Sequence record: PQ287320.1
Reading direction: 5' to 3' (one strand)
DNA length: 64,000 nt
Part shown: positions 7,234 through 55,193 of the stretch, piece after piece
How positions within the stretch are numbered: the stretch's first letter is position 1
Layout of the letters: every line of letters starts with the position of its first letter
Translations under genes and position numbers: made by a program
Notes under the pieces: model-generated
Told to the model about the DNA's origin: nothing
What the model saw: only the letters and a program-made list of their open reading frames with translations
The model's database searches: none

Positions 7234-7262
7234 CCTTTTGTTAAGACCTCGCCGCTACGGTG
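7230..7262 (+). promoter_or_regulatory. CtrA-box promoter cassette 9
   Basis: GTAA-CCTTTTG-TTAA 7230-7244; TACGGT 7256. Confidence 0.65.
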
Positions 7263-7297
7263 GCGAGGTCAAACAACCCCCGGAAGGATCGACTCCC

Positions 7298-7576
7298 ATG
7301 CGTAAGCCCCTGACCAAGGAACAAAAGGCCCGCCGCCGCCAGACGCGCCGCGCCGCCCGCCTCAACTGGTCTGATGAACGCCGCGCCCGCGAGTATGAGC
7401 GCCAGACTCGCTTTTTCCACATGATCGCCCTTCGCGCCCAAGCGGCCGGAGACAAGCGCGAGGCCATGCGCCTTGCGACCCTGGCCAGCAAGAAACACAC
7501 TTTCGCCCGTCTGGCGCAATCGTGCGCCCGCATTAACGCGCTCGCGGTTCATCCGTGGGCGTCGGTCGCCGCCTAA
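7298..7576 (+). CDS. Basic Arg-rich early protein
   Basis: GGAAGGA RBS. Confidence 0.65.
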   Translation: MRKPLTKEQKARRRQTRRAARLNWSDERRAREYERQTRFFHMIALRAQAAGDKREAMRLATLASKKHTFARLAQSCARINALAVHPWASVAA

Positions 7577-7588
7577 GGAGCCCCGCCC

Positions 7589-7879
7589 GTGACCTTCATT
7601 CCCTCCCCGCCCATGTCGCACCCTCACGCCCTGGCCGTCATCGCCCTGGCCGGGCGCGTTCTGGACCTCGCGCGCCTCCCCGGCGCCGATCAACGCGCCG
7701 CCGCGATTGATCTTGTCGGCGACCTCTACGCCCTGGCCGACTCCATCGACGTGACCGCCGGCCACCTCGTCGGCGCCGTCGGCGCGTCCCTGGACGGGAC
7801 CGCCCCGGCCGATCACCTGCGCGCCGCCCTGGACGCGTACAACCAAGCCGCCGCCCTGGCCTTGCCGGAAGCCGCCTGA
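7589..7879 (+). CDS. Early hypothetical protein
   Basis: AAGGAG RBS, GTG start. Confidence 0.6.
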   Translation: MTFIPSPPMSHPHALAVIALAGRVLDLARLPGADQRAAAIDLVGDLYALADSIDVTAGHLVGAVGASLDGTAPADHLRAALDAYNQAAALALPEAA

Positions 7880-7881
7880 CC

Positions 7882-8472
7882 ATGAACCCGAACCGCTACC
7901 GCCTCGCGCCCCGCGACCGCTTCAGCCGCGACCTAGCCGAAACCCTCTATCAGGCCGCCGAAGCCGTCGCCCGCGTGATTCCCCTCGTGCCCGAAACCGC
8001 CCCCGATGAGCGCCGCGCGCTGGGCAAGGTCCGCGCCGACCTGCTCACCCATAGCGCCGGCGCCCTCGTGCCCAAGCCGCCGGCCGCCGTGCTCGCAACC
8101 CTCGTTTGGGTTGTCGAGATGGCGCAAGATCGCGCGACCAACGCCGATTTCAACACCGCCCAAGAGGGACTCGACGAACACGAGTCCCTAGCCTTTGTCG
8201 CCGACTGGCTGGAAGCCGAAGGCCAAGACGTGACGCCGATTCGCAACGCGCAACCGTCCGCCGACGCCCTGGCCGAACTCGCCGCCCGCCGCGACGCCGA
8301 ACAAGAGGCCCTGGACGCCCTGGAAGCCGCCGCCCTGACCGAAGAGCCGGGCGACGTGATCACCGACGCCTTGCGCCCCTATCTGGGCGCCATCCTGGCC
8401 GAAACCCACTCTGACGACGTGCTGGCGGCGCTGGACCGCGCCGGCTTCGCGATCACCCGCAAGGAGGCTTAA
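7882..8472 (+). CDS. Early hypothetical protein
   Basis: 196-aa ORF, operon-packed. Confidence 0.7.
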   Translation: MNPNRYRLAPRDRFSRDLAETLYQAAEAVARVIPLVPETAPDERRALGKVRADLLTHSAGALVPKPPAAVLATLVWVVEMAQDRATNADFNTAQEGLDEHESLAFVADWLEAEGQDVTPIRNAQPSADALAELAARRDAEQEALDALEAAALTEEPGDVITDALRPYLGAILAETHSDDVLAALDRAGFAITRKEA

Positions 8473-8477
8473 AGACC

Positions 8478-8711
8478 ATGGAAGCCCGAGTCATCCCCGG
8501 CCCCGTCCCGTCCGCCCTGGATGCGGCTTGCCATGCCGTCACGTGCGGTTATGGCAAGCTGCAAAGCGCCGCCTTCCAACGCGGTGCCTCCTACGCCCGC
8601 CTAGGCCTCCCCGTCGACGACTCCGGCCGCTTCGGCGCCTATGTCCGCGCCGGCGCCACGTGGGTTGAAAACGAAACCAACCGCCGCGCCGCGCAACGGG
8701 AGGCCCGCTAG
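8478..8711 (+). CDS. Early hypothetical protein
   Basis: AAGGAGG RBS. Confidence 0.6.
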   Translation: MEARVIPGPVPSALDAACHAVTCGYGKLQSAAFQRGASYARLGLPVDDSGRFGAYVRAGATWVENETNRRAAQREAR

Positions 8712-8714
8712 ATC

Positions 8715-9056
8715 ATGACTGACCTTTCCACCGTCCCGACCGCCCTCCTTATCGCCGAACTCTACCGCCGCCCCGTGGCGCTCTGTGTGTTCGAGGGCGT
8801 CGACCTGATGGCCGAAACCGACGCGTTCGAGGACTCGACCAAGGCCGGCCAATGGCTCGCCGGAAAAGCGTCCTACGTCGCCGACGCCATGAGCGGCGCG
8901 GGCTGGGACTCGGTGCGCTATCACCTGACCGCCGACGGGCTGGGCGCCAGCGACGACGACGACGACGAGACGGGCGACGACGTGCCCGACTCGCTGTCCG
9001 GCTTCGATCCGGGCGGCGCGGGCCAAAGACTGGGCTACGTTCCCCCGCGCCGCTAA
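8715..9056 (+). CDS. Early hypothetical protein with acidic tail
   Basis: GGAGG RBS; SDDDDDETGDD tract. Confidence 0.65.
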   Translation: MTDLSTVPTALLIAELYRRPVALCVFEGVDLMAETDAFEDSTKAGQWLAGKASYVADAMSGAGWDSVRYHLTADGLGASDDDDDETGDDVPDSLSGFDPGGAGQRLGYVPPRR

Positions 9057-9237
9057 GTCATCAAATCCCCCGTCTATGACATGTCGCGGGCTGAATACTT
9101 CACCCGCGACAATCTCCCCTAGTAAAGCTCACGACTGGTTTCGTGACATAGCGCAAAGGATTGAAATTGCTCGAAAAACTCCTAGAGGCGCACAAGGTCA
9201 TTTTCTGGCTGATTCTTCTCGCTTGCCTCTGGCGCTT

Positions 9238-9300
9238 TTAACGGTTTGTTAACCCCTGGCCCACTAGGGTCTAATTCCCGGCGCGGCAATCCCGCCGCCC
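9238..9300 (+). promoter_or_regulatory. CtrA-box promoter cassette 10 with AATCCC-loop hairpin
   Basis: TTAA-CGGTTTG-TTAAC 9238-9253; TAGGGT 9265. Confidence 0.8.
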
Positions 9301-9322
9301 GGCCTTCCTTCGGAGCTAGATC

Positions 9323-9768
9323 ATGTTCGCTTCCGTGACCCTCCCCGCCCGCGACGCCCAAGGCCTGAGCCTGGACACCGTCCATGCGGTTTTCCGCCTC
9401 GAACTGGCGCAACACTTCGAACACGTGATTTCCGCCCCGTCGTCGACACCTGGACCGATGAGGCCACCGGCGCCGAGATGAGCGAAGCGGCCGTTTGCTT
9501 CACCGTTTCGGCGACCCCGGCCGCGTGGGAAGCCAAGGGCGGACGCCTCGCGCGCCGCCTGGAAAATCTCGCCGCGCGCTATGCCGCCGACTGCGACGCC
9601 CCGGCCCTGACCGTCACCCACTGCGACGGCTCGACGGTCTATGTCGGCGCCCTGGAAGCGGCCGAACGCGTCGCCCCGGTGCAAGGCCCGACCCGTGCGG
9701 CGGACCCGGCTTTCCTCCCCCGGATGCGCGAGGATAGGGCCGCCCGTTTCGAGCGCCTGACCGCCTAG
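9323..9768 (+). CDS. Early hypothetical protein (frameshifted ~9437)
   Basis: MFASVTLPARDAQ... continues into the 9478 ORF after a -1 shift. Confidence 0.55.
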
Positions 9769-9786
9769 CCCCTGGCCTGACCGCCT

Positions 9787-9819
9787 AAGCGCGCCCCCTC
9801 GCAAGGGGCGCGCTTTTCT
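9787..9819 (+). terminator. Intrinsic terminator
   Basis: AAGCGCGCCCC/GGGGCGCGCTT plus TTCT. Confidence 0.75.
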
Positions 9820-9826
9820 GCATCTG

Positions 9827-9890
9827 TTTACTTGTTGTTAAGGAATAGCCTGCTATTGTCCCCTTGTTGGCGGCGCATCCCGCGCCGCCC
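9827..9890 (+). promoter_or_regulatory. CtrA-box promoter cassette 11 with ATCCC-loop hairpin
   Basis: TTTA-N7-TTAA 9827-9841; TATTGT 9854; GGCGGCGC-ATCCC-GCGCCGCC. Confidence 0.75.
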
Positions 9891-9908
9891 CTTTCTGGAT
9901 CGCTCCCC

Positions 9909-10307
9909 ATGGCTCGCCCTTCCGACCTGCTCAACGTCAACGCCGCCCGCGTCCTGGCTTGCCTCGCCCCGATCGCCGAAGCCGCCAAGGCTTGCAGCGA
10001 AGCCGACCGCCTCGCCCTTTCCTACACCCTGCAAGCCTGCGAACTGGTCGCCTCCTGGCGTCGCAACCATACGGAAACCGACCGCCGCAAGGCCTATGGC
10101 GCCGCCGCCGCTGCTCAAGCCCTGGCCCTGGCCTCGGCCCTGCAACCGGCCACCCTGCAAGGCGGGGCCGTGCGCCGCGCTCTGGGCGCCTATGCCGCCG
10201 CCCTGCAAACCCTGCTGGACGGTAACCCCGTCATGGCCGTGCGCGCGGCCGAAGGGGCTTCGCTGTCGGTTCGGGCGCGCTACGCGAACACGCTCATCCC
10301 GGCTTAA
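9909..10307 (+). CDS. Ala-rich early protein
   Basis: ATG after cassette 11. Confidence 0.65.
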   Translation: MARPSDLLNVNAARVLACLAPIAEAAKACSEADRLALSYTLQACELVASWRRNHTETDRRKAYGAAAAAQALALASALQPATLQGGAVRRALGAYAAALQTLLDGNPVMAVRAAEGASLSVRARYANTLIPA

Positions 10308-10336
10308 CCTCTTGTTAAGACCTCCCGGCCTATAGT
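10304..10336 (+). promoter_or_regulatory. CtrA-box promoter cassette 12
   Basis: TTAA-CCTCTTG-TTAA 10304-10318; TATAGT 10331. Confidence 0.8.
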
Positions 10337-10361
10337 CGGGAGGTCACAAGGAGACACCCCC

Positions 10362-10553
10362 ATGACCCGCCCCGGCCCCGCTTCCCTCCTGACCTCGCAA
10401 GCGACGTTCTCGCCGCGTAACCTCACCCTTCCGGGCGCGCGCCCCATGCCGATCCGCGAGCCGCAAGGCTGGACCATGGGCCAATGCGTGGCCTTGGGCG
10501 TGACCCTCGGCGGCTTCGCCTTCCTCGCCCTGAAGGTCTGCGGTCTGGTCTGA
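10362..10553 (+). CDS. Small protein with C-terminal transmembrane helix
   Basis: AAGGAG RBS; hydrophobic C-terminus. Confidence 0.6.
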   Translation: MTRPGPASLLTSQATFSPRNLTLPGARPMPIREPQGWTMGQCVALGVTLGGFAFLALKVCGLV

Positions 10554-10638
10554 CCGCCCCCGGCGCCCCGGTCGGCTTGACCGGGGCGTGTCCCATATCG
10601 GGACACCCCCCGGTAGGGGGTATCTTTTTTCTTTCGGA

Positions 10639-10912
10639 GGGACCCAAAGGCCCCACCCGTTAACCATTTTTGGCGGCGCCCCCTGGCGCCTACGGATAGG
10701 TTTGAAAATTCAAGTTGACAAAACCAGCATCGCGCGTCGAGGATCACGACGTTAGCCACCGCCTCCGGCTGACGAAGCGGGCGACTGCCCCCCATCTTGT
10801 CGCCCGCCGGCCCACCTCCGCCAGATGAAGAGCCGGGGGTGGGGCCTTTTCTTTTTCCGGCCCAGGGGACCCAAGGCCCCCACCCTTTCCAAACCAAGTC
10901 GCCATGGGTCCC
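10639..10912. repeat. GGGACCC-core direct and inverted repeats in a 450-bp intergenic gap
   Basis: GGGACCCAA(A)GGCCCC(C)ACCC at 10639 and 10866; inverted GGGTCCC at 10906. Confidence 0.7.
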
Positions 10913-11004
10913 CTCGGAAAGAATCGTTTTTCATAAACCCCGGTTGACAGAACTGGAACTGGCTTCTAAGTGTTGCCCGACGACACCCAAGGAGACCCGA
11001 TCCC

Positions 11005-11241
11005 GTGAGCGACGGCTACGCCACCCGAGGCCCCGGCCACACCAAGTTCTTCGCCTCCGATGACGGCAAGCTGGTGATGCGCAGCCTGCACAACGACCCG
11101 GCCTGGACCCAGCCCGTCGCCCACGACGAAGCGCCCCTGCCGGCGTGGAAGGTCGCCTCCCTCCTGCAAGACGCCTATGACCTCGGCCGTCGCGAGCAGC
11201 AGGAGATCGTCCGCCGCGCCATCGGAGCCGCCTCGAAATGA
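11005..11241 (+). CDS. Hypothetical protein
   Basis: AAGGAG RBS; TTGACA promoter-like site upstream. Confidence 0.65.
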   Translation: MSDGYATRGPGHTKFFASDDGKLVMRSLHNDPAWTQPVAHDEAPLPAWKVASLLQDAYDLGRREQQEIVRRAIGAASK

Positions 11242-11905
11242 CCGACCTCACCTATGCCGAGCGCTATGCGCGCGAGACCCTGGCCTTGACGTTGCATGGC
11301 CAGACCCGCAGGAGCAACTCGGTCTACGAGTCCCCGCTCTGGCAGCAACTCTCCCCCGAGCAGCGCGAAGGCTGGCGCCAGGAGGCCGACAAGTTCGTCG
11401 CCGAGCAGGAGGGTGACGCCACGGCTGTCACCAAGGACCAGACGCGCAAGCTGGAGCGCTGGGAAGGCGCCCTGCTGGCCGTGGCCTTCGGGCTCGACCC
11501 GGAAGGCTACCACGACGCCAAGGACCACCGCGCCGGCCGCGACATCGCCTCCTATTTCCAGGACACGCAGCCCTACGACTACAAGCTCACCGACGAGGTG
11601 CTGCTGAACGCCTATTCCCACGCCGACGCCCTGGGCCTGGACATGCCGGCCTTTCCGACCGACGCCTTCTCGCCTCAAGCGGTCGAGAAGGTCAGCCGGC
11701 GCGTCCTGACCGACTGGGAAGCCGCCGTCATGGCCGTGTCCCAGAAGGACCACCCGCGCCTCTACGAGAACTACAAGTTCTCCGTCCCCTACGCCTTCCG
11801 CTTCACCGACGAGACCCTGGGCCTCTTCACCACCAAGATCGAACAGGGCGGCGGGCGCGACGTCCCCACCGCTCGCCGGCCGACACCAAGAGGTACCCCA
11901 TCTGA
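11238..11905 (+). CDS. Hypothetical protein (probable frameshift near the 3' end)
   Basis: A -1 shift places TGA at 11903-11905, overlapping the next ATG. Confidence 0.6.
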
Positions 11906-12201
11906 TGCGCCGCTTCTCCATCCTGACCCTCACGGCCGCCGCGATCGCCCTGGGCTGCGTCGCCACCCTCACCGCCTGCGCCGACCAGACCAAGGTGGAC
12001 GATCAGGTCTACGCCAAGCTGGACAACGGCTGCGTCGTCCACAAGATCGTCCGCCAGGAAAAGGGCAGCATGTTCACCGAGGAGGTCTTCACGACCGTCT
12101 GCCCGAACGGCGCCACCCGCACTGAATGGGAGACGACCAGGATCGTCGGCAAGCTGGTGACCACCGAAAAGCACGCCACCGAAACCCCGGCGACGCGCTG
12201 A
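11905..12201 (+). CDS. Predicted lipoprotein
   Basis: Signal peptide with lipobox LTA-C. Confidence 0.7.
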   Translation: MRRFSILTLTAAAIALGCVATLTACADQTKVDDQVYAKLDNGCVVHKIVRQEKGSMFTEEVFTTVCPNGATRTEWETTRIVGKLVTTEKHATETPATR

Positions 12202-12401
12202 TGGCCGCCCCGCTCGCCGACTACGCCGTGATCGAGACCGTCGCGATCGCGGCCTATGAGAGCAAGGTCCGCAGCGCCGGTCCGCAAAACGCCCAGCAGT
12301 GGTGCTCCTGGAAGGGGCTCCCGCCGGCCGAGCGCGGCGAGTGGCGCAACCACGCCCGCGACCTGATCCAGGAAGCCAAGGCCCAGCACGAGGGAAAATG
12401 A
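12201..12401 (+). CDS. Hypothetical protein
   Basis: TGATG overlap; MAAPLADYAVIET... Confidence 0.6.
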   Translation: MAAPLADYAVIETVAIAAYESKVRSAGPQNAQQWCSWKGLPPAERGEWRNHARDLIQEAKAQHEGK

Positions 12402-13420
12402 TGAACCGCCGCACCTTCTTCCGTTCCGTCGCCGCCCTGGCGCTGACTGCCGCCTCGGGTCTGCCAGCCTCGGCCAAGCCCTATCCGTCGCCGGTGATCT
12501 CGCGCACCCTGATCGAGCAGGCCGAGCAGGTCTTGCGTGAAGGCGCCCCTGAGTCCGTCATTCGCTCGGCGGTGATGGAGCAATTCGCCTTCCCGGACAT
12601 CACCAATGCGCTGGAGTTCGTTGACGTTGGGGCCGACAACTGGGTTCCTGGCGACGGCAAGCGCCTGCGGATCATGGGCGGCGACATCGACGTCGCCCAG
12701 AGCTTGATCAAGACCTACGGCCCGAACGTCATCCAGCACCAGCGCCGGATGAAGCTGAAGTCGCTGTCGCTCTATTTCGCCGACGTCATCGTCAACGGGA
12801 ACAACGAAGAGGACCCCCGCGAGTTCGACGGCATCCGTCGCCGCGCCCAGATCGTGCGGATCAACGCCAAGAAGGACCTCGATTTCGACAGCCTCGACGC
12901 CCTGATCCGCGACATCCCCGGCGCCAACGCCTTGCTGATGAGCAAGCGCATGCGCAACATCATGACGCGGCGCGCGCCGAACGCGGGCCGGCAGGCGATT
13001 TGGCTGCGGGATCGCTTCGGGGGTCGTCGCGCCACCTACAGCCCCAAGGGCAGCAAGGCGGGTCTCTCGATCCTGGTCACCGACTACAGCGACAAGAACG
13101 TCCAGGTCATCGACTTCAACGAGGGCATGGGCGGCGCGAGGGGCGGCGACTACACCTCGATCTACGTCCTGCGCCTGGGGACGGACGGGTTGCACGCGCG
13201 CCAGAACGCCATGCTGGAGGTCAGCGAGACCCAGGACATCAGCTACGTCTACGACCGCGACAACGCGCGCATGGTCCTGGTCAGCCACCAGCGTCCGGTC
13301 TTCCAGACCCTGGACGTGAATCGCCTGCGGGTCGAATGGCTCGTCACCCTGGAGACCGACACCCGCGCCGGCCCGGCGATCGGCCGGCTGACGGGCATCG
13401 CCAAGCCGAGTATCGCCTGA
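12398..13420 (+). CDS. Major capsid protein paralog with N-terminal twin-arginine signal peptide
   Basis: Blocks RLRIMGGDIDV, DPREFDGIRRR, MSKRMRN, ILVTDYSDKNVQVIDFNE and RVEWLV match 32028-32963; N-terminus NRRTFFRSVAALALTAASGLPASA. Confidence 0.85.
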   Translation: MMNRRTFFRSVAALALTAASGLPASAKPYPSPVISRTLIEQAEQVLREGAPESVIRSAVMEQFAFPDITNALEFVDVGADNWVPGDGKRLRIMGGDIDVAQSLIKTYGPNVIQHQRRMKLKSLSLYFADVIVNGNNEEDPREFDGIRRRAQIVRINAKKDLDFDSLDALIRDIPGANALLMSKRMRNIMTRRAPNAGRQAIWLRDRFGGRRATYSPKGSKAGLSILVTDYSDKNVQVIDFNEGMGGARGGDYTSIYVLRLGTDGLHARQNAMLEVSETQDISYVYDRDNARMVLVSHQRPVFQTLDVNRLRVEWLVTLETDTRAGPAIGRLTGIAKPSIA

Positions 13421-13986
13421 TGAACGCCTCCCTCATCTTCAATCGTGCCTTCACGGTCGCCGATCTCGTCTCCGCCATGCGGGTGCTCCCCTCGGTTGGC
13501 GGCATCCTGGCCGACGCCCGTGCCTTCAATCACGCTGCTTCGATCGGCGTCAAGACGGGCACGGCCAGCTTCGAGACCAACGTCATGGGCCTGAAGGTCC
13601 TGATCTTCAATCGCCAGCCGATGTGGATCGAAACGGCCCTGAAGGTCGAGCCGCGCGATGACGTCCCCGAGGTCGAGGAGGTCCTGCGCTTCCTGGTCCT
13701 CGGCCGCGCCGTCCATGATGAGTTCATCGCCCGTCGGGCCGAGGCCTGGGCGTGGCGTGAGCAATACGATGCCCCGCTCGACGACGCCAACGCCTTCCTG
13801 GCGGTCAAGGGTCAGTTCGAGGCCGACTTTCCCGAGCGGCGCTTCGGCGGAACGCATGGTCTGAACGTCAAGGGCGTCGCCGACCTCGTCTCGAACGACA
13901 CCGTCCTGGACGTCAAGTTCCTCATCCCCAAATCCGGTCCGGACGACTTCGCCGGCCTCGCGGCCCAGACCTTCAACGAGCGGTAG
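13420..13986 (+). CDS. Hypothetical protein
   Basis: TGATG overlap; 188 aa. Confidence 0.65.
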   Translation: MNASLIFNRAFTVADLVSAMRVLPSVGGILADARAFNHAASIGVKTGTASFETNVMGLKVLIFNRQPMWIETALKVEPRDDVPEVEEVLRFLVLGRAVHDEFIARRAEAWAWREQYDAPLDDANAFLAVKGQFEADFPERRFGGTHGLNVKGVADLVSNDTVLDVKFLIPKSGPDDFAGLAAQTFNER

Positions 13987-13987
13987 C

Positions 13988-14354
13988 ATGAGCGTCAACT
14001 ACTACGTCGAGCGTTACGGCCGCGTCAGCGGAGCCCGGACCAAGATCACCCACATCGGCCAGTGGGCGAATGGACGCTTCCTGTTCAGCGGGAGCCAGCA
14101 CCGCACCACCCGCGACTGGCGCGACGCCCTTCGCGCCCTCACCGCTGACGAAAAGATCGTCAGCGAGAACGGCGTGGTCATGACCCGCGCGAATTCTGGA
14201 ACATGGTCGGCGAGACCCTGGCCAACGACACCACTCTCGACTACGCCCTGAACGTCGCCGAGGGCTTCGAGCAGTACAGCCTCGCGCGCGGCTTCCTGGA
14301 GGGCCGCTATTGGATGGACGGCCCTTCGCCTTCACCTCTGGAGAGTTCCACTGA
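13988..14354 (+). CDS. Hypothetical protein (two probable frameshifts)
   Basis: MSVNYYVERY... to REFWNMVGET... to GPFAFTSGEFH* after two -1 shifts; stop overlaps next ATG. Confidence 0.5.
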
Positions 14355-14641
14355 TGCCCCTCTACCGCAAGAAGCCCGTCGTGATCGAGGCGATCACCTT
14401 CGAGGACCTCGTCCAGCACGGGATCGAAGCCGGCGCCAACATCGTCAACGGCATGCCCTGGTCGTTCCAGTACAAGGGCCAGCCGATCACCCACGAGAAC
14501 GACGACACCTACCTCATCCCGACCCTGGAAGGCACCATGTTCTTCCGGCGCGGCGACATGCTCATCACGGGCGTGAAGGGTGAAATCTACCCGTGCGAGC
14601 GGGCCATTTTCGAGGCGACCTATGAGCAAGTCGAGTCCTAG
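14354..14641 (+). CDS. Conserved small phage protein (YRKKPVVIEA..TLEG.M...GD..I.GVKGE.YPC family)
   Basis: Recognisable motif. Confidence 0.8.
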   Translation: MPLYRKKPVVIEAITFEDLVQHGIEAGANIVNGMPWSFQYKGQPITHENDDTYLIPTLEGTMFFRRGDMLITGVKGEIYPCERAIFEATYEQVES

Positions 14642-14891
14642 CAAGTCGGAATTGATGGCGGTCGGCGAGCGCAAGCACGAGACCTGCCGCTACGGCCGGC
14701 TGACCGAGGTCTGGACGACCGACTGCGCCACGGGCAAGGAGACCGCCGGCGTCGGCCCGCTCTGCACCTTCGAGCCGGCCGGCGATCTCCCGCCGGCCCT
14801 CAAGCGGGTGTGGGGCGGCTTGATCGACTACGATCGCGACTGCGCCGTCTGCCTCGCCCATCGCGAGGTCCCGCTGGAGCCCCTCCCATGA
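14622..14891 (+). CDS. Small Cys-containing hypothetical protein
   Basis: C..C motifs; operon-packed. Confidence 0.55.
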   Translation: MSKSSPSKSELMAVGERKHETCRYGRLTEVWTTDCATGKETAGVGPLCTFEPAGDLPPALKRVWGGLIDYDRDCAVCLAHREVPLEPLP

Positions 14892-15178
14892 GCACCTGGG
14901 ACAACCGCGTCTTCTGCCCGTGCGGCCACAATGACGACCACTATGGCGGCGATCCGGCCCTGGCCGGCTTCTGGTACAAGAACGACGTCTGCCCCCGCTG
15001 CGCGACGACCGGTGGTCATTGGCGCGTCTTCACCGTCCGCTGGGTCTCCAAGGCCGTCTGGTGGGCACCGTGGACCTGGGGCAAGGGCTATTGGGAGTGC
15101 CAGACCGCGCAGGAGCGCAAGCCCCTGACCGAGGTCTGGCCCGTGCTCGCCGACAAGGAGCCTGTCCATGACGATTGA
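14888..15178 (+). CDS. Small Zn-ribbon-like protein
   Basis: CPCG...CPRC. Confidence 0.6.
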   Translation: MSTWDNRVFCPCGHNDDHYGGDPALAGFWYKNDVCPRCATTGGHWRVFTVRWVSKAVWWAPWTWGKGYWECQTAQERKPLTEVWPVLADKEPVHDD

Positions 15179-15572
15179 ACCGACCGCCCCTCACCTCTCC
15201 GTCTACAACCCCGACGCCGTCGTGGTCAACGTGGTGACCTATGAGCGCCATCCGCTGTTCCGCATCCGCAAGGTGATGAACTATTCCGGCGGCCGGCCCT
15301 ACACCGACCACTACGCCGTCCAGCGCCGGCTCCCGCTCCCGTGGGTCGATCTCTACCTCACGGTGACGATCTGGACGGTGAACAAGGACGAGACCCGGAT
15401 CACGCGTCGCCCGGCCCGGCTGGGGGACCGCAAGACGGCCGAGGAGATCGTCGCCACCAAGCCGGCCTTCTTCCCGCGCCGCCCCAAGTCCTGGCGCCCC
15501 AGGCCCGACCCGTCGCCCAATCCGGACGTCGCCCATTTCAACGCCGAAGGCAAGGTAGTCACCCGTGGCTGA
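15168..15572 (+). CDS. Hypothetical protein
   Basis: AAGGAG RBS. Confidence 0.6.
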   Translation: MTIEPTAPHLSVYNPDAVVVNVVTYERHPLFRIRKVMNYSGGRPYTDHYAVQRRLPLPWVDLYLTVTIWTVNKDETRITRRPARLGDRKTAEEIVATKPAFFPRRPKSWRPRPDPSPNPDVAHFNAEGKVVTRG

Positions 15573-16601
15573 TGAGACCCTCTCCCCGACCGACCGCGCG
15601 ATCCTCGACCTCCTCCAGGAGGAGGCCGCCGAGGTCCTGATCGAGTTCGCCCCGCTGGTCGGCCGGCTGATCAAGGTCGCCTCCAAGGTCAAGCGCTTCG
15701 GGAACGGGATCAACCCGTTCGAGCCAGCCGAGACGGCCAAGCCGAATTTCGAGCTTCTTCAGGACGAGGTCGGCGACTTCGAGACCCTGGTCGACATCCT
15801 GATCGAGCGCGGCGTCCTGACCCGCGAGGGGATCGACGCGCGCAAGGCCTGGAAGCGCGGCATGCTCAAGACCCATGGGTCCCTCCCGCCCGGAACCTTC
15901 GAGGCGCCGGCCTATGTCGCCCAGGTCCAGGTCCACGACGAGGTCATGGCCGATCCGGCGAACCAGAAGAAGCCCTACACCGCCCTCTTCGGCGGACACG
16001 CCCCGTCGGCCGAGCCTCCGCCCGCCGTGGCGCTGGGCCACGGCCTTGATCCGTCCAACCCGATCGTCGCCCTGGCCAATGACGTCTGTATCGGCGGCTA
16101 CGTCGACAAGGCCCCTACCAGGAGATGCGCCTGCGCATCGCCCTCACCGGGAGCAACGCCCCGGCCTCGGATGACTGGGTCGCCGCGCTCAAGAGGCTGA
16201 ACCACCTGCTCGCCCAGCCGGCCTCGGACGAGGACCTCATGAAGGCGTTCGAGTTCAGCTACACCGGAGGTAGCAGCCATGAGGATTTCAATCCGCTCCT
16301 GGCGCGCTCGGCGCGGGACCCGTCGAAGTACAAGAACGAGACGGTCCAGCAGCGGTTCGTGGGTTGGCGCTCGGGCTGGCGCTACCTGATCTGCGAGCTT
16401 CAGGGCCATCACGAGGCGAAGCCGACAGCCACGCCGTCGAGCGAGTTCGCCCCGCCCGGCGCGACGGGCGAGGACCTCTACCGCCGCTACGTCAATGGCG
16501 CCAACATCCACTCCAATCGCTTCCCGTCCTGGGGCGAACTAACGCCGGAGACCCAGCGCTTGTGGACCGAAGCGGCCCTGGCGGGGAAGTCTCAGCCTTG
16601 A
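15565..16601 (+). CDS. MazG-like all-alpha NTP pyrophosphatase domain fused to an unknown C-terminal region (probable frameshift ~16113; may instead be two genes, 15565 and 16125)
   Basis: LQEEAAEV...LQDEVGD acidic motifs; a -1 shift joins KAP-YQEMRLRI. Confidence 0.5.
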
Positions 16602-39648: not shown

Positions 39649-42600
39649 TTGGTCGATCTCGTCGCCGGCACGCCCGCTTCCGTTGCCTATTCGGGCAGCG
39701 CGGTGGACTATGTCGTCAAGGCGACGGGGCAGGTGGACATCCACCTGTGGGGCGGCGCGGGCGCGGGCGGCTACTATGCCAACGGCACGGGCCAGCCCAA
39801 CAAGTTCGGCGGGGCCGGCGGCTACACCAACGTCCGGTTCATGGCGGAGGTGGGCGACACCATCACCGTCGAGGTCGGGCAGGGCGGGCGCGTTCCGTCC
39901 GGATCGGGCACCACCGCTTCGGCCGGCGGCCTGGGTGGCTGGCCCGACGGCGGCTTTGGCGCGATCAACTCCGGCGCGGCGTGGGTTGCGCCGGGCGGCG
40001 GCGGCGGCTCGACCCGCATCTACAAGAACGGCGACCTGATCGCGGTCGCCGGCGGCGGCGGCGGTGCCACCGGCTATTACAGCGGCGGCAACGGCGGCGG
40101 CGCGCTCGGCATGGCCTCGACCGACGCCTCGTCCGGCGCGCCCGGCACGCAGTTGGCGGGCGGCACCGCCGGCTCGGGCACGCTGGCTGTCCAGTCCGGC
40201 GGCTATTTCCGGGGCGGTCAGGCCAGCACCGCTCCCAACGTCTCCAACGCCTATACGGGCGGCGGCGGCGGCGGCGGCTTCTATGGCGGGGCCTCGAACG
40301 GCGGCGGCTCGGGCGCGCACGGCTCGGGCGGCGGCGGCTCGGGCTGGATGATCCAGACGACCGACGTCGCCGGCTCCTGCCGCGTCGCGCCGCAGGACGG
40401 CACGGGCACGCCGATCAACCCGAATGGCATCACGATCCCGGCCGGCACCGCCCAGGGCGGCGGCAACAACACCGCCACCAACCAGTGGGCCTCCGTCCAG
40501 GCGGGCGGCGACGGCTTCGTCTACATCGCCCTGACCGACGTCGCCGCGTCCGCCCCGACCCTGTCCAGCGGCGCCACCACGCTCAGCTATACCGGATCGC
40601 GTCAGGTCTACAAGGTCACCGACATCTGCTCGGTGGACTTCGAGATGTGGGGCGGCGGCGGCGGCGGCGGCTTCTACTCCTCGGGCGGCAACGCCGCGCG
40701 CTTCGGCGGCGCGGCCGGCTACACCAAGCTCACCAAAATCCTCTATCCCGGCGACATCGTCGAGGTCGAAGTCGCCCAGGGGGTCAAGCCCCCAGCGGCG
40801 TAAGCCAGACCGGTGGCGCGGGCGGCTGGCCCAACGGTGGCGCGGGCGGACGCCCGGCGGCGGGCGCCCCCAACTTCGGCGGCGGCGGCGGCTCGACCAA
40901 CGTCTGGGTTAATGGACGCCTTCTGGCGGTCGCGGCCGGCGGCGGCGGCTCGACGGGCTTCTATTACGGCGGGGCCGGCGGTGGGCGCTACGGCCTCCAG
41001 TCCTCCGACCAGACCACCAACAACGGCACCGGCGGGACCTGGGGTGGGGTGAACACCACCAGCAGCCAGGGTCGCGGCTATTTCATGCAAGGTGGGCACG
41101 GCTCGCCCATCGAGTCCCCGACCATCGCGATCGCCACGGCGGGCGCGGGCGGCGGCGGCGGCTATTACGGCGGCGGCGGGGCCAAGGGCGGCTCGGGCAC
41201 CCACGGCTCGGGCGGCGGCGGCTGTGGCTACGTCTCCGGCGACAACACCTATAACCGCGTCATGCAGCAGGGCACGCCCAACACCGGCGCGCCCTATGAT
41301 CCGGGCACCAAGCCGGCCGGCGTGGGCGTCGGCGGCACGGGGGCTCCTCGGCCGGCACCACGGGTCCGGGCGGCAATGGCGCGTGCCTGCTCAACGTCAC
41401 GCCCCTGACCGGCCTGTCGTCCCTGCCGACCGGCAAGACCGTCTTCAGCTTCACCAACGCCGCCGAGCACTATGTCGCCCCCTCCGACGGCGTCATGGCC
41501 GTCAAGGTGTGGGGCGCGGGCGGCGGTGGCTGCACGCGCTCGTCCGGGACCTTGCGGCGCGGCGGCGGCGGCGGCTTCTTCCGCGTCGACCTGATCAAGA
41601 TCGCCCAGGGCGACATCGTCACCTTCGTTGTCGGAGAAGGCGGCAAGGGCATGCCCGGCGCCAACCTCGGCGGGCGCGGGGGCTTCCCGAACGGCGAAGG
41701 CGGCAACGCGGGCGACGCCACCGGCGGCAACGGGGCGGCGGCGGCTCCTCGCACGTCTACCTCAACGGCAAGCTCATCGGGGTCGCGGCCGGCGGCGGCG
41801 GCGGCGCGATCTCGTTCGACGGTCAGACGGCGGGTCTCGCCGGTTATCCCCCCAGCAGCGACGGCTTCGACAAGACCGGGGCGACGCTGTTCTCCGGCGG
41901 CTATTCGGGCCAACGCGGCGCGGAAGGCAACAACCGGGGCGTCTTCATGCTGGGCGGTATGGGACAGGTCGACGGCAACCTGACGATCGACACGCCCAAC
42001 AACCTCTGCGGCGGCGGCGGCGGCGGCGGCTACTGGGGCGGGGCCGGCGCGGTCCCGCTGAACTCGCGCTTCCAGGGCGGCGGCGCGGGCACCACCTACA
42101 TCTCGTCCGACTACATAGGGACCCAGCTTGCGGGCTCCACCAGCGGGACCAACATCACCGACGCCGACTGGGGCTCGTCCGCCAGCGTCGGCGGCCAGGG
42201 CTCCAACACCGTCGGCAACGCCATCACCAATGGCGGGCACGGCCGCATCGTCTGCCAGTTTGACATCCCGACGCTTCTGAACGAGAGCGCCAGCAACAAC
42301 ACCCCCGTCACCAGCAGCGTGCAGACCTACATGGTCGGCAACGACGGCACCCTGACCCTCAAAGCCTGGGGCGGCGGCGGCGGCGGCTCGATGATGGCGG
42401 GCAACGGCGGCACCGAGGCCGCCGGCGGCGGCGGCTACGTGACGGGCACGCTGGATGTCAAGAAGGGCCAGATCGTCCGCATCTGGAACGGACGCGGCGG
42501 CGGCGGGGCCAACTACACCAGTGGCGCGGGCGGGTCTTACGTCGGCACGGGCGGCACGGGCGGCTGGCCGGACGGCGGCACGGGTGGCATGCACGTCTCG

Positions 42601-45600
42601 GGTATCTTCGGCGGCGGCGGCGGTTCCTCGCGCGTCTATGTCGACGACGTCCTGCTCCTGGTGGCGGGCGGCGGCGGCGGCCTGGGGATCGCCACGGCGA
42701 CCACCACCGCCGGCGGCGGCGGCGGTCTGACGGGTCAGAACTCCGACACCGTGACCGTCTTCAACACCGGCGGCAGCGGCTATCGCGGCGGCGTCAACAC
42801 CGCCCGCCCGACCGACACCAGCACCACCGGCACCCGTTTCCAGGGTGGCAACGGCTATGTCCAGGGCAGCACCTCGGGCACCAGCAACATCAGCCATGGC
42901 GGCGGCGGCGGCGGCGGCCTCTACGGCGGCGCGGGCTCGGGCTCCAACAACGGTTCCTCGACCGGCTGGCTCGGCGGAGCCGGCGGCTCGGGCTTCATCG
43001 CCGACGGCAAGGGCGTCCTGGCTGATGACTGGCTGCGCGACTATGTCGCCCTCCAGTACAGCTTCGAGACGGCTGGTGATCTGGCCGATGACGGCCGCGC
43101 GGTCAACACCCAGCTTCTCGACACCGCGCCGACCACCACGACCTCGGGGCCGAAGTACGGCACCAAGTGCCTGACCATGAACGGCGGTCACCTGACCGCC
43201 AACATCCCGGCGATCGGTACCCAGGACTTCACCCTGGAAGGCTGGTTCAACCCCTCGTCGCTGGCGACCGGGGTGATGATGCTGATCGGCGACCAGAGCA
43301 TCAACGGCCTGTCGCTGCACTACTATCCGAGCGCCACGGTCCTGGCCCTGCGCTACAACAACACCGCCGGCGACGGCTCGGCCGACTACAAATACACCGA
43401 CAGCGCCCGTGCGGCCAACGTCTGGGCGCACTACGCCGTCGTGCGCGACATCAACGGCACGCGCGTCTATAAGGACGGCGTCCTGGTGACCACGGTCACC
43501 GGCAACCCGCTCAACATCACCGCCACGACGCTGACGCTGGGGAACTACCGGGCGGTCTCGGGCGCGAGCACGCGCTTCGTCGGCAAGATCGACGAGGTGC
43601 GCCTGACGATCGGCGTCGCCCGCTATCGCCAGAACTTCAAGCCGACCGCGTTCCGGAACAGCTTCACCACCGGCCTGACGGCGACGGCGATCGCCCAGGC
43701 GACCAACTCCGGCGCTGGCCTGCCGGCCTCGACCGGCGTCTCGGGCTATCTGGCGGGTCGCGGCGTCGGTGCGGTCCTCAAGACCTCGGGCAACGGCAAC
43801 ACCGGCGGCGACGGTCAGGTCAACTACTATCTGGCGACCTCCACGGTCGCAGCCGTCGGTCCGATCGGTACCGTCAATGTCAGCGGCCTCGACAACGCCG
43901 CCGCCGGCGCCTTCTATCCCCTGCCGGGCACGGGCACGACCACGGTCGTCCCCTATACGGGCGCGCGCGTCAACTATTCGGTCGACGACCCCGCTGGCGC
44001 TCGGATCAAGGTCGAGATGTGGGGCGGCGGCGGGGCGGCTGCTCGTTCAACAATACCCTGACGACCAACGGCGGCGGCGGCGGCGGCTATACCGTCTACG
44101 AGATCGACCTCGCCTATGGCGACACCGTCATTCTCCAGACCCCGTCCGGCGGCTACGGCTCGACCACCGCCGGCGGCAGCAATGCCACGGGCATCAACAC
44201 CGGCGGCTATCCCGATGGCGGCGACGGCTATCGCCCTGCCTTCACCGCCTTCAACGGCGGCGGCGGCGGTTCGGCCCGGATGTGGGCGCGCGGCAATCTG
44301 GCCGCCGTGGCGGGCGGCGGCGGTGGCAGCGCCTACGGTTCGGGAGCCTACGACTGGGCGGGCGGTCCGGGCGGCGGCTCGTCCGGCGGCTCGGGCCAGT
44401 ACGACGGCGTCAACGCCACCTTCCCCAACACCGGCGGCACGCAGAGCGCCGGCGGCGTCGGCACGATCAACGGCCAGAGCGGCGCGTTCCTGCAAGGCGG
44501 CGTCGGGGGCTCGACGGTCGGCGTCGCCAACAACGGTCCGGGCGGCGGCGGCGGCTATTACGGCGGCGGCGGCGGCGGCGCCTACAAGGCGGGCGGTGGC
44601 GGCTCGGGCTACGTCAACACCACCATCCCTGGCTATCGCACCGGCTCGACCTCGGGCGGCTCGGGCAACCTGCCCGGCGGCATGGGCTCGCCCAACTACG
44701 CCTCGGGTATCGGGGTCGGCTCGAACGGCAAGGGCGGGGCCGCCCTGCACGGCGGCCCCGGCCGCATCGTCCTGTCGGTCATCACCCCGACCAACGCCAG
44801 CGCCTCGGGTACGATCGGCGTCGTCGACATCCAGGCCATCAACACCTTCGGCCTGCTGATCGGCCAGCCGACCGGCGCGATCGGCACGATCACCCTGACC
44901 CCGCCGGTCGGTCAGTCGGGTCAGCCGGCCTTCGCTTCGGGCGCCCTGCCGACGATCGGCGTCGGCCCGCCCGAGACGATCCCGCAGGCCCAGGCGATCG
45001 TCATCGTTCCGATCAACGATCAGACCTCGATCCTGGTCGAGCCGCCGATCAACGCCCCGCTGCAAATCCCCGCCGACGGGATCGGCGACATCGGCACGAT
45101 CACCGTCACGGGCCTGACCGCCACGGAGACGGCAGGCGCGGACTATGCCGTCCCGGCGATCGGCACGATCAGCGTCACCGCGCCCGAGGGCGTGGCGGTT
45201 GAAATTCCGCCGGTCCTGGCCAGCGGCGCGCTTCCGACCGTCACCGTCGTCGCGCCCGAGGCGACCTACGAGGTCATTCCGCCGGTCTACGCAGCCGGCG
45301 ACATCGGCACGATTACGGTCGTCACGATCAACGGCGACGCCTCGACCAACAACAACGTCGCCACCTCGGGCGACATCGGCACGATTACGGTCGCCACGAT
45401 CAACGGCGACGCCGTGGGCGACGATCTGGCCGAGGGCCTGATCGGCACGATCACCCTCACCCCGCCGACCGCCACCGTCTTCCAGGATGCGGCGACGTCG
45501 GGCGACATCGGGACCATTTCGGTCTATGCGATCGAGGGCGGCCAGCCGGCGGACGCCACGGGCGACTTTGGCCTGGGCGGCGGGGCCGTCATCCAGGTCG

Positions 45601-50136: not shown

Positions 50137-50241
50137 TCGCGGTGAGGTGAGAACGCCCTCCTCACGCTCCACCCTCGGGTGGGAAAGTAGGCCAACCGGC
50201 AGGCCCAAGAGATGCGGGACCAGGGGACCCCGCCACCGCGA
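50137..50241 (+). ncRNA. Candidate ~105-nt structured RNA of unknown class
   Basis: 8-bp closing stem TCGCGGTG/CACCGCGA with three internal hairpins, followed by a T-tract. Confidence 0.4.
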
Positions 50242-52574: not shown

Positions 52575-53016
52575 CTTCGACGTTGACACGCGTGACGCGC
52601 TCTGTCATACGTCACGACAGGACGAACGCCCCTTGACCGGGTTGGTTGTCACACCGGGTCGTCACGCCCCGTTGAGGCCCTAGTAGTCCTTTCGTGTGGA
52701 GTTTTCCGCCTCCCTCCCAGACAAGGAGGCGGACCCCAACATCGCGATCTCCCCGTGATCGTCGGCGACGGGCGCCGTCAGAGACCTCGGCCTGCGCGGC
52801 TCCGCTGCGGCCCAGGGATCGTCCCGACCAAATTTTTTATGTCGTGGTGCTTGACACCGCCAAACGCTTCTGCTAGGGTTCACGTCATGAGCAAGACTTA
52901 TCGTCAATTTGTGCGCCAGATTCAGGTCGTCCGGAATATCCGGGCGGGCCGCTCGCGCATGGCTGACGGAGGCACTCGGGTCTAACGACCCAGACCAAGC
53001 TCCACCAGCTTTCGAG

Positions 53017-53060
53017 AGGCCCGCCTGGAAACCCCAGGCGGGCCTTTTCTTTTTCTTTTT
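53017..53060 (+). terminator. Intrinsic terminator
   Basis: AGGCCCGCCTGG/CCAGGCGGGCCT plus long T-tract. Confidence 0.85.
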
Positions 53061-53114: not shown

Positions 53115-53199
53115 GGATGCTTAAAGCTGGAGGGCTCCAGCCGGGGACTGTAAATCCCCTCTCTTCGGAGGAGTGGTTCGATCCCACAAGCATCCACCA
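53115..53199 (+). tRNA. trnY: tRNA-Tyr(GTA)
   Basis: Loop CT-GTA-AA; long arm. Confidence 0.85.
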
Positions 53200-53880: not shown

Positions 53881-53908
53881 ACACGCCGGCCTTAGGGCCG
53901 GCCCACGC

Positions 53909-53991
53909 GCCCTGGTAACCGGGGAGGACTACGAATCCTCTAGCCGTAGCAGGAGTTGAGAAGGGTGGTTCGAATCCACTCCAGGGCGCCA
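53909..53991 (+). tRNA. tRNA-Arg(ACG)-like RNA lacking a D arm
   Basis: Perfect acceptor GCCCTGG/CCAGGGC; loop CT-ACG-AA; only 7 nt between acceptor and anticodon stems; ~23-nt extra region. Confidence 0.55.
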
Positions 53992-53999: not shown

Positions 54000-54082
54000 A
54001 GCGCGCAGGCCGAGCAGGATCATCGTCAGGCGTCGCCCTCCGAAGGCGAAGAGGCCCGGTTCGAGTCCGGGGCGCGCTGCCA
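54000..54082 (+). tRNA. trnR: tRNA-Arg(CCG), enlarged D region
   Basis: Loop CT-CCG-AA; AGCGCGC/GCGCGCT acceptor. Confidence 0.7.
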
Positions 54083-54087
54083 TCCCC

Positions 54088-54165
54088 GCGCGGGTAGCTC
54101 AACGGAGCCAGAGCAGCCGTCTTCTACACGGTGGGTTGGGGGTTCGAGTCCCTCCCCGTGCGCCA
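54088..54165 (+). tRNA. trnR: tRNA-Arg(TCT)
   Basis: Loop CT-TCT-AC; GCCA. Confidence 0.9.
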
Positions 54166-54194
54166 AAGCTTGACGGGCGATGCCGAATCGCCCA

Positions 54195-54690
54195 GGATCG
54201 GAGCGTAGGCCTCTTCCCGTGGGCCTGACATATACGTCCGCCAGCACTGCCATTCCGCGTCAGCGGGCGCGACGCGAGGAGGGTTAACCCCTCGTTGTCG
54301 TGCAGTCGGGTGGTGTGGACGTCCCAACGTGATCTTCGAACGCGGCATGCCGTGGAGGGGTGATCGGATGGCGAACCAAGGGACACCTCCTTATCCTGGC
54401 CTGGGCCGCATGGGGCTCCGCTGGGAGAAACGGCCTGACCCGACCGGAGGTGCGTCCAGGATGCCGGCTCCCCATGCCAGAGCCTCGTGGACTAGGGTCT
54501 GAAATTTCTGGCTTCGATGTGTTGACACGAGGATCGGAGCCCGCTACAACCCTCCTTGTCAGAGCGGCGCTGGGCCTGAAGGCCCGCCGTGAGCTTCTGT
54601 CGTTGTCGTCAGGAACGGCCCGCCAGCAATCCCGCCGGCGGGTCGTTTCGTTATGGGCGTCCTGCGACATTCAGTCGACCAAGGGTAGTG
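54195..54690 (+). ncRNA. Candidate large (~500 nt) structured ncRNA
   Basis: No credible ORF; at least nine stems found by eye, including long-range pairings; TTGACG at 54170 upstream. Confidence 0.5.
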
Positions 54691-54704
54691 TCGTGAATCT
54701 TGAC
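54690..54704 (+). promoter_or_regulatory. GANTC/-35 promoter
   Basis: GTCGTGAATCTTGACT. Confidence 0.65.
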
Positions 54705-54773
54705 TTTCGTGGGCCTTTCCGGTAGCGTGCAGACCATCAGCTATCGCTCATAAGTCGGGGACAGAGAGCCGCA

Positions 54774-55193
54774 ATGTCGCAAGACCAAACCGGCTCCGCG
54801 TCGCAGAGCCAAGAACACATCTTCCGTAAGCTGGATGAGCTTGGCGCAATGCACATGCGTACCCGTGAGGACATGGCCGAGGTGAAGGAGAAGGTGAAGA
54901 CCATCGCCTCCTCCCAGGAGCGCTTCGAGAAGCGCCAGGATCACTTCGAGCAGGAAATCTGGCGCGAGATGGAAGCTCGCCACTCCGAGACCAAGGAGTC
55001 CCTGGCCCGCATCAGCGCCGAGACCGCCGAGCGTATCGACGAGATCGAATCCAAGGTCAACACGATTCGCGAGGAGCGGATCGCCGAGAAGGCCCAATGG
55101 CGTGGCCCCGAGAAGGCGATCGCCGCACTGGTCGCGGTCGCCGGCGCGATCGCCGCGATCGCTTCCATCATGACCTTCATGAAGGCGCATTAA
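54774..55193 (+). CDS. Coiled-coil protein with C-terminal transmembrane helix
   Basis: Heptad-rich body; AIAALVAVAGAIAAIASIM. Confidence 0.7.
   Translation: MSQDQTGSASQSQEHIFRKLDELGAMHMRTREDMAEVKEKVKTIASSQERFEKRQDHFEQEIWREMEARHSETKESLARISAETAERIDEIESKVNTIREERIAEKAQWRGPEKAIAALVAVAGAIAAIASIMTFMKAH

Follow-up and report, generated by a model that had tools for sequence, protein, structure and literature searches.

The subject of this study is the intergenic region between the transfer RNA (tRNA) genes and the structural genes of Caulobacter phage BL57 (PQ287320.1), a 608-nucleotide (nt) gap at 54166-54773 of the 64,000-nt stretch of DNA that was analysed, hereafter called the window. The gap follows an array of 24 tRNAs, identified with ARAGORN, that lies on the same strand. 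An earlier reading of the BL57 letters, here called the original prediction, proposed that a single ornate RNA of about 500 nt is encoded directly after the array. Comparison with related phages points to a compound non-coding locus, a series of promoters and RNA elements and not one ornate RNA. The best-supported unit is a predicted small RNA (sRNA) of about 95 nt, which would be expressed from its own promoter, P2, and would act in trans. Judging from sequence comparison and folding, we place the probability of this reading at roughly 0.55.

Setting and conservation of the locus

The gap is bounded by a tRNA-Arg gene upstream and by a coding sequence (CDS) downstream (Table 1). The product of the CDS matched phrog_12353 over its full length, residues 1-139 falling on profile positions 1-138 of 138, and the CDS is followed by PhoH, head-tail adaptor and tail genes. 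The BL57 annotation places the start of this gene, BL57_090, at 54849. The ATG at 54774 is the start in relatives and gives the full-length phrog_12353 match; the annotation is probably 25 codons short (54774-54848).

No gene is annotated in the gap in BL57 or in 9/10 fetched phiCbK-like records. The exception is RBC57, for which a 57-amino acid (aa) minus-strand 'hypothetical protein' is annotated in the variable leader. The locus is kept in 26 phiCbK-like records and in Brevundimonas phage Bajun. Bases 166-606 of the 608 (window 54331-54771) are 75-78% identical in distant clades. Ten phiCbK-like loci were aligned, representing 3 clades: BL57/Swift/Magneto/Karma, phiCbK/RBC57/Ccr5/Ccr10, and Rogue/BL10. 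Bajun, CcrColossus (Colossus), CcrPW and the jumbo Brevundimonas phages Marchewka and Kabachok were added to the comparison, while CcrBL9 and CcrSC were left out.

Known RNA families were sought with cmscan and Rfam 15 using permissive filters. No family, including GOLLD, ROOL, transfer-messenger RNA (tmRNA) and 6S, matched 54166-54773 at E <= 1, and the homologous regions of phiCbK, Rogue, Bajun, Colossus and Marchewka were likewise empty at that threshold. ARAGORN identified no tmRNA in the window, and weak matches to the Rfam tmRNA_permuted model fell only over true tRNAs elsewhere. A search of IMG/VR for distant homologues returned known isolates only, and the literature found does not describe the locus.

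P2 and the predicted sRNA

The P2 layout, TTGACA followed by 17 nt and TAnAnn, was found in 7 lineages with unrelated spacers: BL57, phiCbK, Rogue, Bajun, Colossus/PW, Marchewka and Kabachok. Conserved hexamers around unrelated spacers are the classic signature of a working promoter, and P2 is predicted to be one. It was the sole TTGAC-N16-20-GCTANAWC-type match in the 64-kilobase (kb) window. Some 14-20 nt before the -35 hexamer, at roughly -49 to -55, is a conserved AAATTT(TT) block that may be an UP element of P2. Because a conserved promoter lies inside the proposed large RNA, the 3' ~95 nt appear to form a unit of their own. In Colossus, CcrPW, Marchewka and Kabachok the P2-sRNA module comes directly after the last tRNA and the core described below is missing. 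Since P2 adjoins the last tRNA without the core in these phages, the module is likely the ancestral, self-sufficient unit.

Folding energies were compared with those of dinucleotide shuffles and are given as z-scores. The sRNA is thermodynamically stable. For the 99 nt from 54557 to 54655 z was -4.06, and 0/200 shuffles were as stable. The counterpart in phiCbK (JX100813.1) is at about 52951-53050. The same architecture, a 5' hairpin, a single-stranded stretch with UCGUCA and a terminator hairpin, was obtained in 9 folded homologues. UCGUCA was invariant in 12 aligned sequences and was the only invariant run outside the stems. Its probability of being unpaired was 0.5-0.8 in 8/9 folds and 0.12 in CcrPW. 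The flanking sequence differs: the Colossus and Brevundimonas versions read CCUCC-N-UCGUCA, that of BL57 CUUCUG...UCGUCA. A 1-nt indel separates BL57 from its relatives within this single-stranded stretch.

Both hairpins keep their shape while changing sequence. The 5' hairpin covaries (GGGCC/GGCCC, GGACC/GGUCC, GGGGCC/GGCCCC). The terminator stem is GC-rich, 12-17 base pairs (bp) long and different in sequence in every lineage, and its loop keeps YCCCG. In all homologues the stem is followed by UUUCGYU or UUGUGAUU. A rho-independent terminator is annotated at the position of 54613-54650 in 3 records, Swift, Karma and phiCbK. A simple terminator scan missed the sRNA terminator because the T-run is interrupted. 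The architecture was taken from per-sequence folds. MAFFT alignments of the sRNA across genera (A2 and A3) placed paired bases out of register, and alignment-based folds and pair counts are therefore uninformative for this element. The best reading of these data is a previously unannotated sRNA family that would be common to phiCbK-like Caulobacter and Brevundimonas phages.

The conserved core

Upstream of P2 lies a conserved core of ~185 nt. Its invariant blocks are 54331-54362, GGCCTGACCCGACC (54432-54445) and AGGGTCTGAAATTT (54494-54507), with diverged segments between them. The consensus fold has 40 pairs; 98.6% of the cells were paired and 9 pairs were changed on both sides. One compensating change is found in core columns 87/108, where C-G is replaced by A-U and the pair differs even between the near-identical Rogue and BL10. 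Another, C-G to G-C, is found at the base of the hairpin made by the invariant 14-mer. Hairpins H2, H3 and H4 recur in the folds per clade. The two-tier hairpin (54454-54492) keeps its shape over 3 unrelated sequences, and the block-to-block length of 62 nt is unchanged. The consensus energy was -35.9 for the forward strand versus -23.7 for the reverse, and the fold is specific to the tRNA strand because it contains many G-U pairs. The closing helices are uninformative since they are invariant, and two alternative partners compete for the 5' GAUCUUCG.

The nhmmer program recovered all core homologues among the sequences gathered. It found the 5' part of the core in Bajun (E = 8.6e-4) and no paralogue in the window. 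Bajun has clear homology to the H2 block GAACGCGGCNNGCCGUGGAGG only, and its alignment to H3 and H4 is unreliable. Metagenome and GTDB scans (185,579 species genomes) for GAACGCGGCNNGCCGTGGAGG (H2 block) generated 37 matches, all of them due to chance as judged by their flanks. The core is thus a conserved, hairpin-rich element that is probably transcribed, and the structural support for it is suggestive but not significant.

P1 and the variable leader

The original prediction placed a TTGACG -35 element at 54170, and it is indeed present (54170-75). It belongs to a putative promoter, P1, that would lie immediately after the tRNA array. CTTGAC just after the tRNA was invariant in 10/10 phiCbK-like loci and in Bajun. 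The -10 element varies across clades (CAGGAT, CAGCTT, CAACTT, CAACGT) with C1, A2 and T6 kept. The spacer contains an inverted repeat, GGGCGAT/ATCGCCC (54175-81/54187-93), and a GANTC site, GAATC (54185-89). The arms of the repeat co-change in RBC57 (GAGCGAT/ATCGCTC). Alternatively, the P1 hairpin may be a 3' trailer hairpin of the tRNA operon.

The leader between P1 and the core has a sequence restricted to BL57, Swift, Magneto and Karma. A different and shorter one takes its place in the phiCbK and Rogue clades, with a deletion of ~55 nt in Ccr10.

All the stems listed in the original prediction exist in BL57, including 54207-11/54222-26 (5/5 pairs), 54354-62/54384-90, 54613-24/54637-48 (12/12 pairs) and the hairpins at 54267-54303 and 54565-54589. 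Several of the pairings are not conserved among relatives. The long-range helix 54305-11/54438-44 pairs at 7/7 positions and the crossing pseudoknot 54316-21/54453-58 at 6/6. Both are clade-specific because their 5' arms (54305-21) lie in the replaced segment 54199-54330, in sequence that exists only in BL57, Swift, Magneto and Karma. Swift and Magneto carry an uncompensated change in one of the two pairings. Pairing of 54605-14 with 54660-68 (7/9, ungapped) is lost in the phiCbK clade. The two copies of AGGATCGGAGC that had been reported are present, but their number is at chance level (2.5 expected when one mismatch is allowed), and the closest relatives lack the sequence. The helix 54483-89/54526-32, which pairs at 7/7 positions in BL57, was rejected. 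It is lost in Swift, Magneto and Karma, and it joins a variable hairpin to the P2 -35 element and spacer.

P3 and the hairpins with C-rich loops

A conserved spacer and a third promoter candidate, P3, separate the terminator from the downstream gene cluster. GTGAATCTTGACTTTCG of P3 was invariant in the phiCbK-like phages and Bajun, and AATCTTGACT was kept in Colossus, Marchewka and Kabachok. In all lineages the first CDS is preceded, downstream of the terminator, by the layout GAATC-TTGACT, 17 nt, TAGCKT. Scanning for P3 with a 14-mer was non-specific.

GAATC, which is a GANTC site and thus a site of CcrM methylation, abuts the -35 TTGAC at 49530, 54700 and 56354 on the plus strand. This arrangement suggests a GcrA/CcrM-responsive class of promoter. 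The non-coding parts of the interval from 49.5 to 56.4 kb contain 13 TTGAC elements.

The original prediction noted that the terminator loop AATCCC (54628-33) is the same as in early-gene leaders, and this observation held up. GCAATCCCGC occurs exactly 6 times in the window, always on the plus strand, at 2368, 4318, 5803, 6497, 9286 and 54626. All but the last (5 of 6) form the loops of hairpins in early-gene leaders, downstream of CtrA-box (TTAA-N7-TTAA) promoters. As regards co-variation of terminator loop and leader loops across genera, the Colossus leader loops were mixed (AUCCC, ACCCC, ACACC and GAUCGG). The TAGTGTC motif of the spacer downstream of the terminator is also found at the -10 region of early promoters.

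The early genes themselves lie in the terminal-repeat region, window 2000-10400 on the plus strand, with CtrA-box promoters of the form TTAA-N7-TTAAG...TAGTGTC. Early leaders were also viewed in Rogue (2600-9600) and Colossus (2680-16600). They contain GC-clamped hairpins with C-rich loops, mostly (A)AUCCC.

Table 1. Features of the BL57 intergenic region, with folding z-scores.
Feature	Position	Strand	Details
Last tRNA of the array, tRNA-Arg (TCT), CCA encoded	54088..54165	+	ARAGORN; Rfam tRNA model 59.1 bits; upstream boundary
P1, promoter candidate	54170..54198	+	-35 TTGACG 54170-75; 17-nt spacer; -10 CAGGAT 54193-98
Clade-variable leader, hairpins 54207-26 and 54267-54303	54199..54330	+	z = -2.2
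Conserved core, ~185 nt	54331..54512	+	Alignment A1 and consensus fold
Core hairpin H2	54341-54354	+	Consensus fold
Core hairpin H3	54356-62/54384-91	+	Consensus fold
Core hairpin H4	54394-54407/54414-26	+	Consensus fold
Core hairpin H5	54431-35/54442-46	+	Consensus fold
Core two-tier hairpin	54454-58/54488-92 with 54466-70/54480-84	+	Consensus fold
P2, predicted housekeeping-sigma-type promoter	54522..54550	+	TTGACA 54522-27; 17 nt; TACAAC 54545-50 (GCTACAAC 54543-50)
Predicted sRNA, ~95 nt	about 54557..54652	+	5' end predicted from the -10 position
sRNA 5' hairpin	54560-54599	+	Per-sequence folds
sRNA single-stranded CU-rich stretch	54600-54615	+	Invariant UCGUCA 54606-11
sRNA terminator stem	54616-27/54634-45, extendable to 54612-49	+	Per-sequence folds
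sRNA terminator loop AAUCCC	54628-33	+	
sRNA tail UUUCGUU	54646-52	+	
Conserved spacer with GGGTAGTGTC (54683-92)	54653..54694	+	Kept in all phiCbK-like loci
P3, promoter candidate of the downstream gene cluster	54695..54728	+	GAATC abutting TTGACT 54700-05; 17 nt; TAGCGT 54723-28
Downstream CDS, 139 aa, phrog_12353	54774..55193	+	Downstream boundary
Fold, whole gap	608 nt	+	z = -2.5
Fold, whole gap	608 nt	-	z = -1.3
Fold, most of the gap	54205-54655	+	z = -1.9
Fold, core, BL57	54326-54517	+	z = +0.3
Fold, core, phiCbK			z = +0.5
Fold, core, Rogue			z = +0.6

Proposed mechanism

The start sites, termination, processing and trans mechanism in the following model, and any function of the core, are predicted from sequence and fold. 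P2 would start a transcript of ~95 nt near 54557. The transcript would fold into a 5' stem-loop, a single-stranded pyrimidine-rich stretch that contains UCGUCA, and an intrinsic terminator that is GC-rich and capped by a C-rich loop. The sRNA would then base-pair in trans with host or phage messenger RNAs (mRNAs). Contact would be made by the exposed CU-rich/UCGUCA stretch and perhaps also by the UCCCG loop. The pairing sites would most likely be found around G-rich ribosome-binding regions.

Transcription of the core may start at the weaker P1, or the core may form the 3' trailer of the tRNA operon. Apart from the sRNA terminator no strong terminator follows the tRNAs, so upstream transcripts would run to 54652 and yield a precursor of ~450-490 nt. 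Cleavage of the precursor, for example at the AU-rich 54500-54510, could release the core together with a second supply of the sRNA. An RNA of this length, from P1 or the tRNA operon to the terminator at 54616-54652, is therefore plausible as a precursor and not as the one folded unit that was originally envisaged.

A wider role can be imagined for the C-rich loops. The (A)AUCCC/YCCCG hairpins might be a shared recognition element for a phage or host RNA-binding or antitermination factor, and the core and the sRNA, as the trailer of the tRNA operon, might form a regulatory hub that times the early-to-late switch of phiCbK-like phages. We regard this proposal as a long shot.

Coding potential and competing explanations

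The features of the core were also considered as those of a small protein, encoded in the frame SSNAACRGGV... or IFERG(M/L)PWRG.... Three frames are open in some genomes. The block-to-block distances in the 3 clades, 101, 113 and 116 nt, are multiples of 3 apart, and the b2-to-b3 block distance is 62 nt in all. The sole variable base of the 32-nt block is synonymous in one frame, and Bajun has a 3-nt deletion in the same block. However, no frame stays intact among close relatives, each being interrupted by 1-nt indels or a stop, with a +1 frameshift in RBC57, Ccr5 and Ccr10 and a stop codon in Karma. The intervening segments are out of frame because the net 3-nt difference between Rogue and phiCbK is composed of several separate 1-nt indels. 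Substitutions by codon position were 28/22/21 in the region, which lacks 3-periodicity, versus 27/24/51 in the neighbouring CDS. The region has no conserved start codon or ribosome-binding site, and its open reading frames (ORFs) had no match in Pfam or PHROG. The region is non-coding, in agreement with the earlier statement that the gap holds no credible ORF, and a protein from the core is very unlikely, so that we give this explanation almost no weight.

Among the non-coding explanations, the region might be mainly DNA-level regulatory sequence plus a terminator for the tRNA operon, the RNA having no function of its own. The conserved blocks would then be promoters, UP elements and sites for host or phage regulators, such as operators and GcrA/CcrM-type GANTC sites. 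Three TTGAC -35 elements, each with a 17-nt spacer, lie within 550 nt; P1 and P3 have GANTC sites; the P1 spacer has an inverted repeat; and the AAATTTTT block sits at the position expected of the P2 UP element. A thermodynamic signal is missing from the core, and the terminator has already been annotated in relatives. Yet a promoter and a terminator ~95 nt apart make an RNA, whatever its purpose, and DNA sites do not explain an invariant single-stranded hexamer or a covarying 5' hairpin. From phage to phage the core blocks shift by tens to hundreds of nt relative to P1 and P2, which hardly suits constraints on DNA architecture, and the G-U-rich, strand-specific pairing favours RNA. This explanation is unlikely. 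Quite unlikely, too, is a late-gene cassette like PR'-tR' of phage lambda, in which P2 would be constitutive and yield a short terminated RNA until a phage antiterminator allowed RNA polymerase to continue into the structural genes. The hairpins and UCGUCA would serve as loading or recognition signals instead of a trans-acting seed, and the (A)AUCCC hairpins of the early leaders would be related nut-like sites. The module, a strong promoter and a strong terminator placed precisely where the tRNA region gives way to the structural genes, fits such a cassette. So do the YCCCG loop kept in the terminators of all lineages, the GCAAUCCCGC loop in 5 early-gene leaders and the similar loops in the leaders of Rogue and Colossus. 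Because the leader loops vary, the match between loops may only mean that a stable type of hairpin is common. In every lineage, unlike lambda, the conserved P3 lies between the terminator and the first downstream gene, and no antiterminator gene was identified, although no search was aimed at Q- or N-like proteins.

The large ornate structured RNA of ~450-500 nt that was originally proposed, a new class transcribed from P1 or as a tRNA trailer and acting as one folded molecule, also has points in its favour. From P1 to the terminator there are ~450 nt free of any other strong terminator, conserved blocks and hairpins extend over 54331-54652, and folding of the whole stretch is somewhat more stable than that of shuffles (z -1.9 to -2.5). 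GOLLD (RF01998) and ROOL (RF03087), which are large ornate RNAs, occur near tRNAs and in prophages (PMC5737381). Other observations speak against a single RNA. The pseudoknot and the long-range helices either belong to one clade or are disrupted in near relatives, the 5' 130 nt are replaced or deleted between clades, and an internal conserved promoter splits the unit. Colossus-type and jumbo Brevundimonas phages hold only the 3' ~100 nt. The region has no Rfam match, and z for the core is close to 0. Measured against shuffles, folding energy favours structure in the whole gap (z -2.5) and in the sRNA (z -4.1) but not in the core (z +0.3). Covariation among homologues gave some compensating pairs in the core and in the sRNA 5' hairpin, but a z of only -1.25 for the core alignment. 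The original prediction was correct that the locus is non-coding, conserved, hairpin-rich, on the tRNA strand and outside any described family; the single ~500-nt ornate fold is improbable.

Several observations weigh against the compound locus with a trans-acting sRNA that we prefer. The core folds no better than shuffles in BL57, phiCbK or Rogue (z +0.3 to +0.6), and column shuffling of the core alignment gave z = -1.25, with 23/200 shuffles as good, which is not significant. The comparison effectively rests on 3 clades and 1 distant partial homologue, and the phages are mosaic. With few clades and mosaic phages, the covariation events in the core are few and may be non-independent. The invariant blocks of the core could be protein-binding sites in the DNA instead of RNA. 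The P1 -10 element is poor, the U-tract of the terminator is interrupted (UUUCGUU), and every transcript end is predicted. A scan confined to the 64-kb phage window found no convincing sRNA target and no exact or near-exact complement. The best duplexes joined the GUCGUUGUCGUC stretch to GGC-repeat coding sequence at 42330-44520 on the plus strand, which is probably a low-complexity effect.

Comparison with known RNAs

The closest likeness is to trans-acting bacterial and phage sRNAs of the Hfq-type architecture, including those that are derived from 3' ends and have a dual origin, in an internal promoter and in the processing of a longer transcript. Like them, the BL57 element would have a dedicated conserved promoter and a length of ~95-115 nt, with a 5' stem-loop, a short conserved single-stranded 'seed', a GC-rich terminator hairpin and a U-containing tail, and it does not code for protein. 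Its 3' end may also be that of a longer transcript from upstream. Sequence and fold point to an independent promoter, an intrinsic terminator and a conserved accessible seed. The differences are that the BL57 sRNA has no Rfam match, that its U-tail is short and interrupted, and that conservation extends to the terminator loop (YCCCG), an unusual trait in a plain terminator.

Phage T4 encodes small, stable, non-coding RNAs, 'species 1 and 2' (rnaC/rnaD), within its tRNA cluster. The likeness is that of small non-coding RNAs encoded next to or in a phage tRNA cluster, with plausible release from the same precursor. Unlike the T4 RNAs, the BL57 sRNA has its own predicted promoter and terminator. 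In phage lambda, the PR'-tR' module makes the 194-nt '6S' late leader RNA. The BL57 module shares with it a strong promoter and a nearby strong terminator immediately upstream of late or structural genes. It differs in that P3 intervenes between the terminator and the first gene.

GOLLD and ROOL resemble the BL57 locus in their phage setting beside tRNA genes, on the same strand and possibly co-transcribed, but context alone does not confer membership. Membership in these families was not borne out, since neither BL57 nor the 5 homologous regions gave a covariance-model match at E <= 1. In addition, multistem junctions and pseudoknots are not conserved in the BL57 region, a promoter divides it, and its conserved unit has ~95 nt compared with 500-800 nt.

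Other features of the tRNA region

Several further elements were observed on the plus strand upstream of the gap. The tRNA array itself contains, at 50137-50241, a skipping-rope RNA (RF02924; 46.3 bits versus a gathering threshold of 36.7), a described motif with a terminator at its 3' end. At 52851-53060, a promoter (TTGACA, 17 nt, TAGGGT) is located 7 nt upstream of an ATG at 52887, and the mRNA is probably leaderless because the promoter is so close. The ATG opens a basic ORF of 32 aa (52887-52985), which is followed by a strong terminator (53014-53048) and T-run. The ORF is conserved in 5 relatives, where it shows changes at third positions and a 3-nt indel that keeps the frame. The BL57 annotation does not include it, and it had no Pfam or PHROG match.

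Immediately ahead of tRNA-Phe, at 53115-53199, is an 85-nt sequence that resembles tRNA-Tyr(GTA). It has a long variable arm, includes the CCA end and hardly varies among relatives. It was called by neither ARAGORN nor the Rfam tRNA model, possibly due to an aberrant D-arm. Two more tRNA-like sequences, at 53893-53990 and 54000-54085, are uncalled in BL57. The tRNA-Sec model gave a weak match at 53908-53988, and relatives are annotated with two tRNA-Ser genes or a tRNA-Arg(CCG) in this interval.

Significance

PhiCbK is the standard phage of the Caulobacter cell-cycle model, and the literature searched describes no phage-encoded regulatory RNA for it. The picture of the gap is corrected from a giant RNA of the GOLLD or ROOL type to a stack of promoters and RNA elements. 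A predicted sRNA with a near-consensus host promoter, in the same position across several genera of the Dolichocephalovirinae that infect Caulobacter and Brevundimonas, is a candidate for a part in host takeover or in the timing of late genes.

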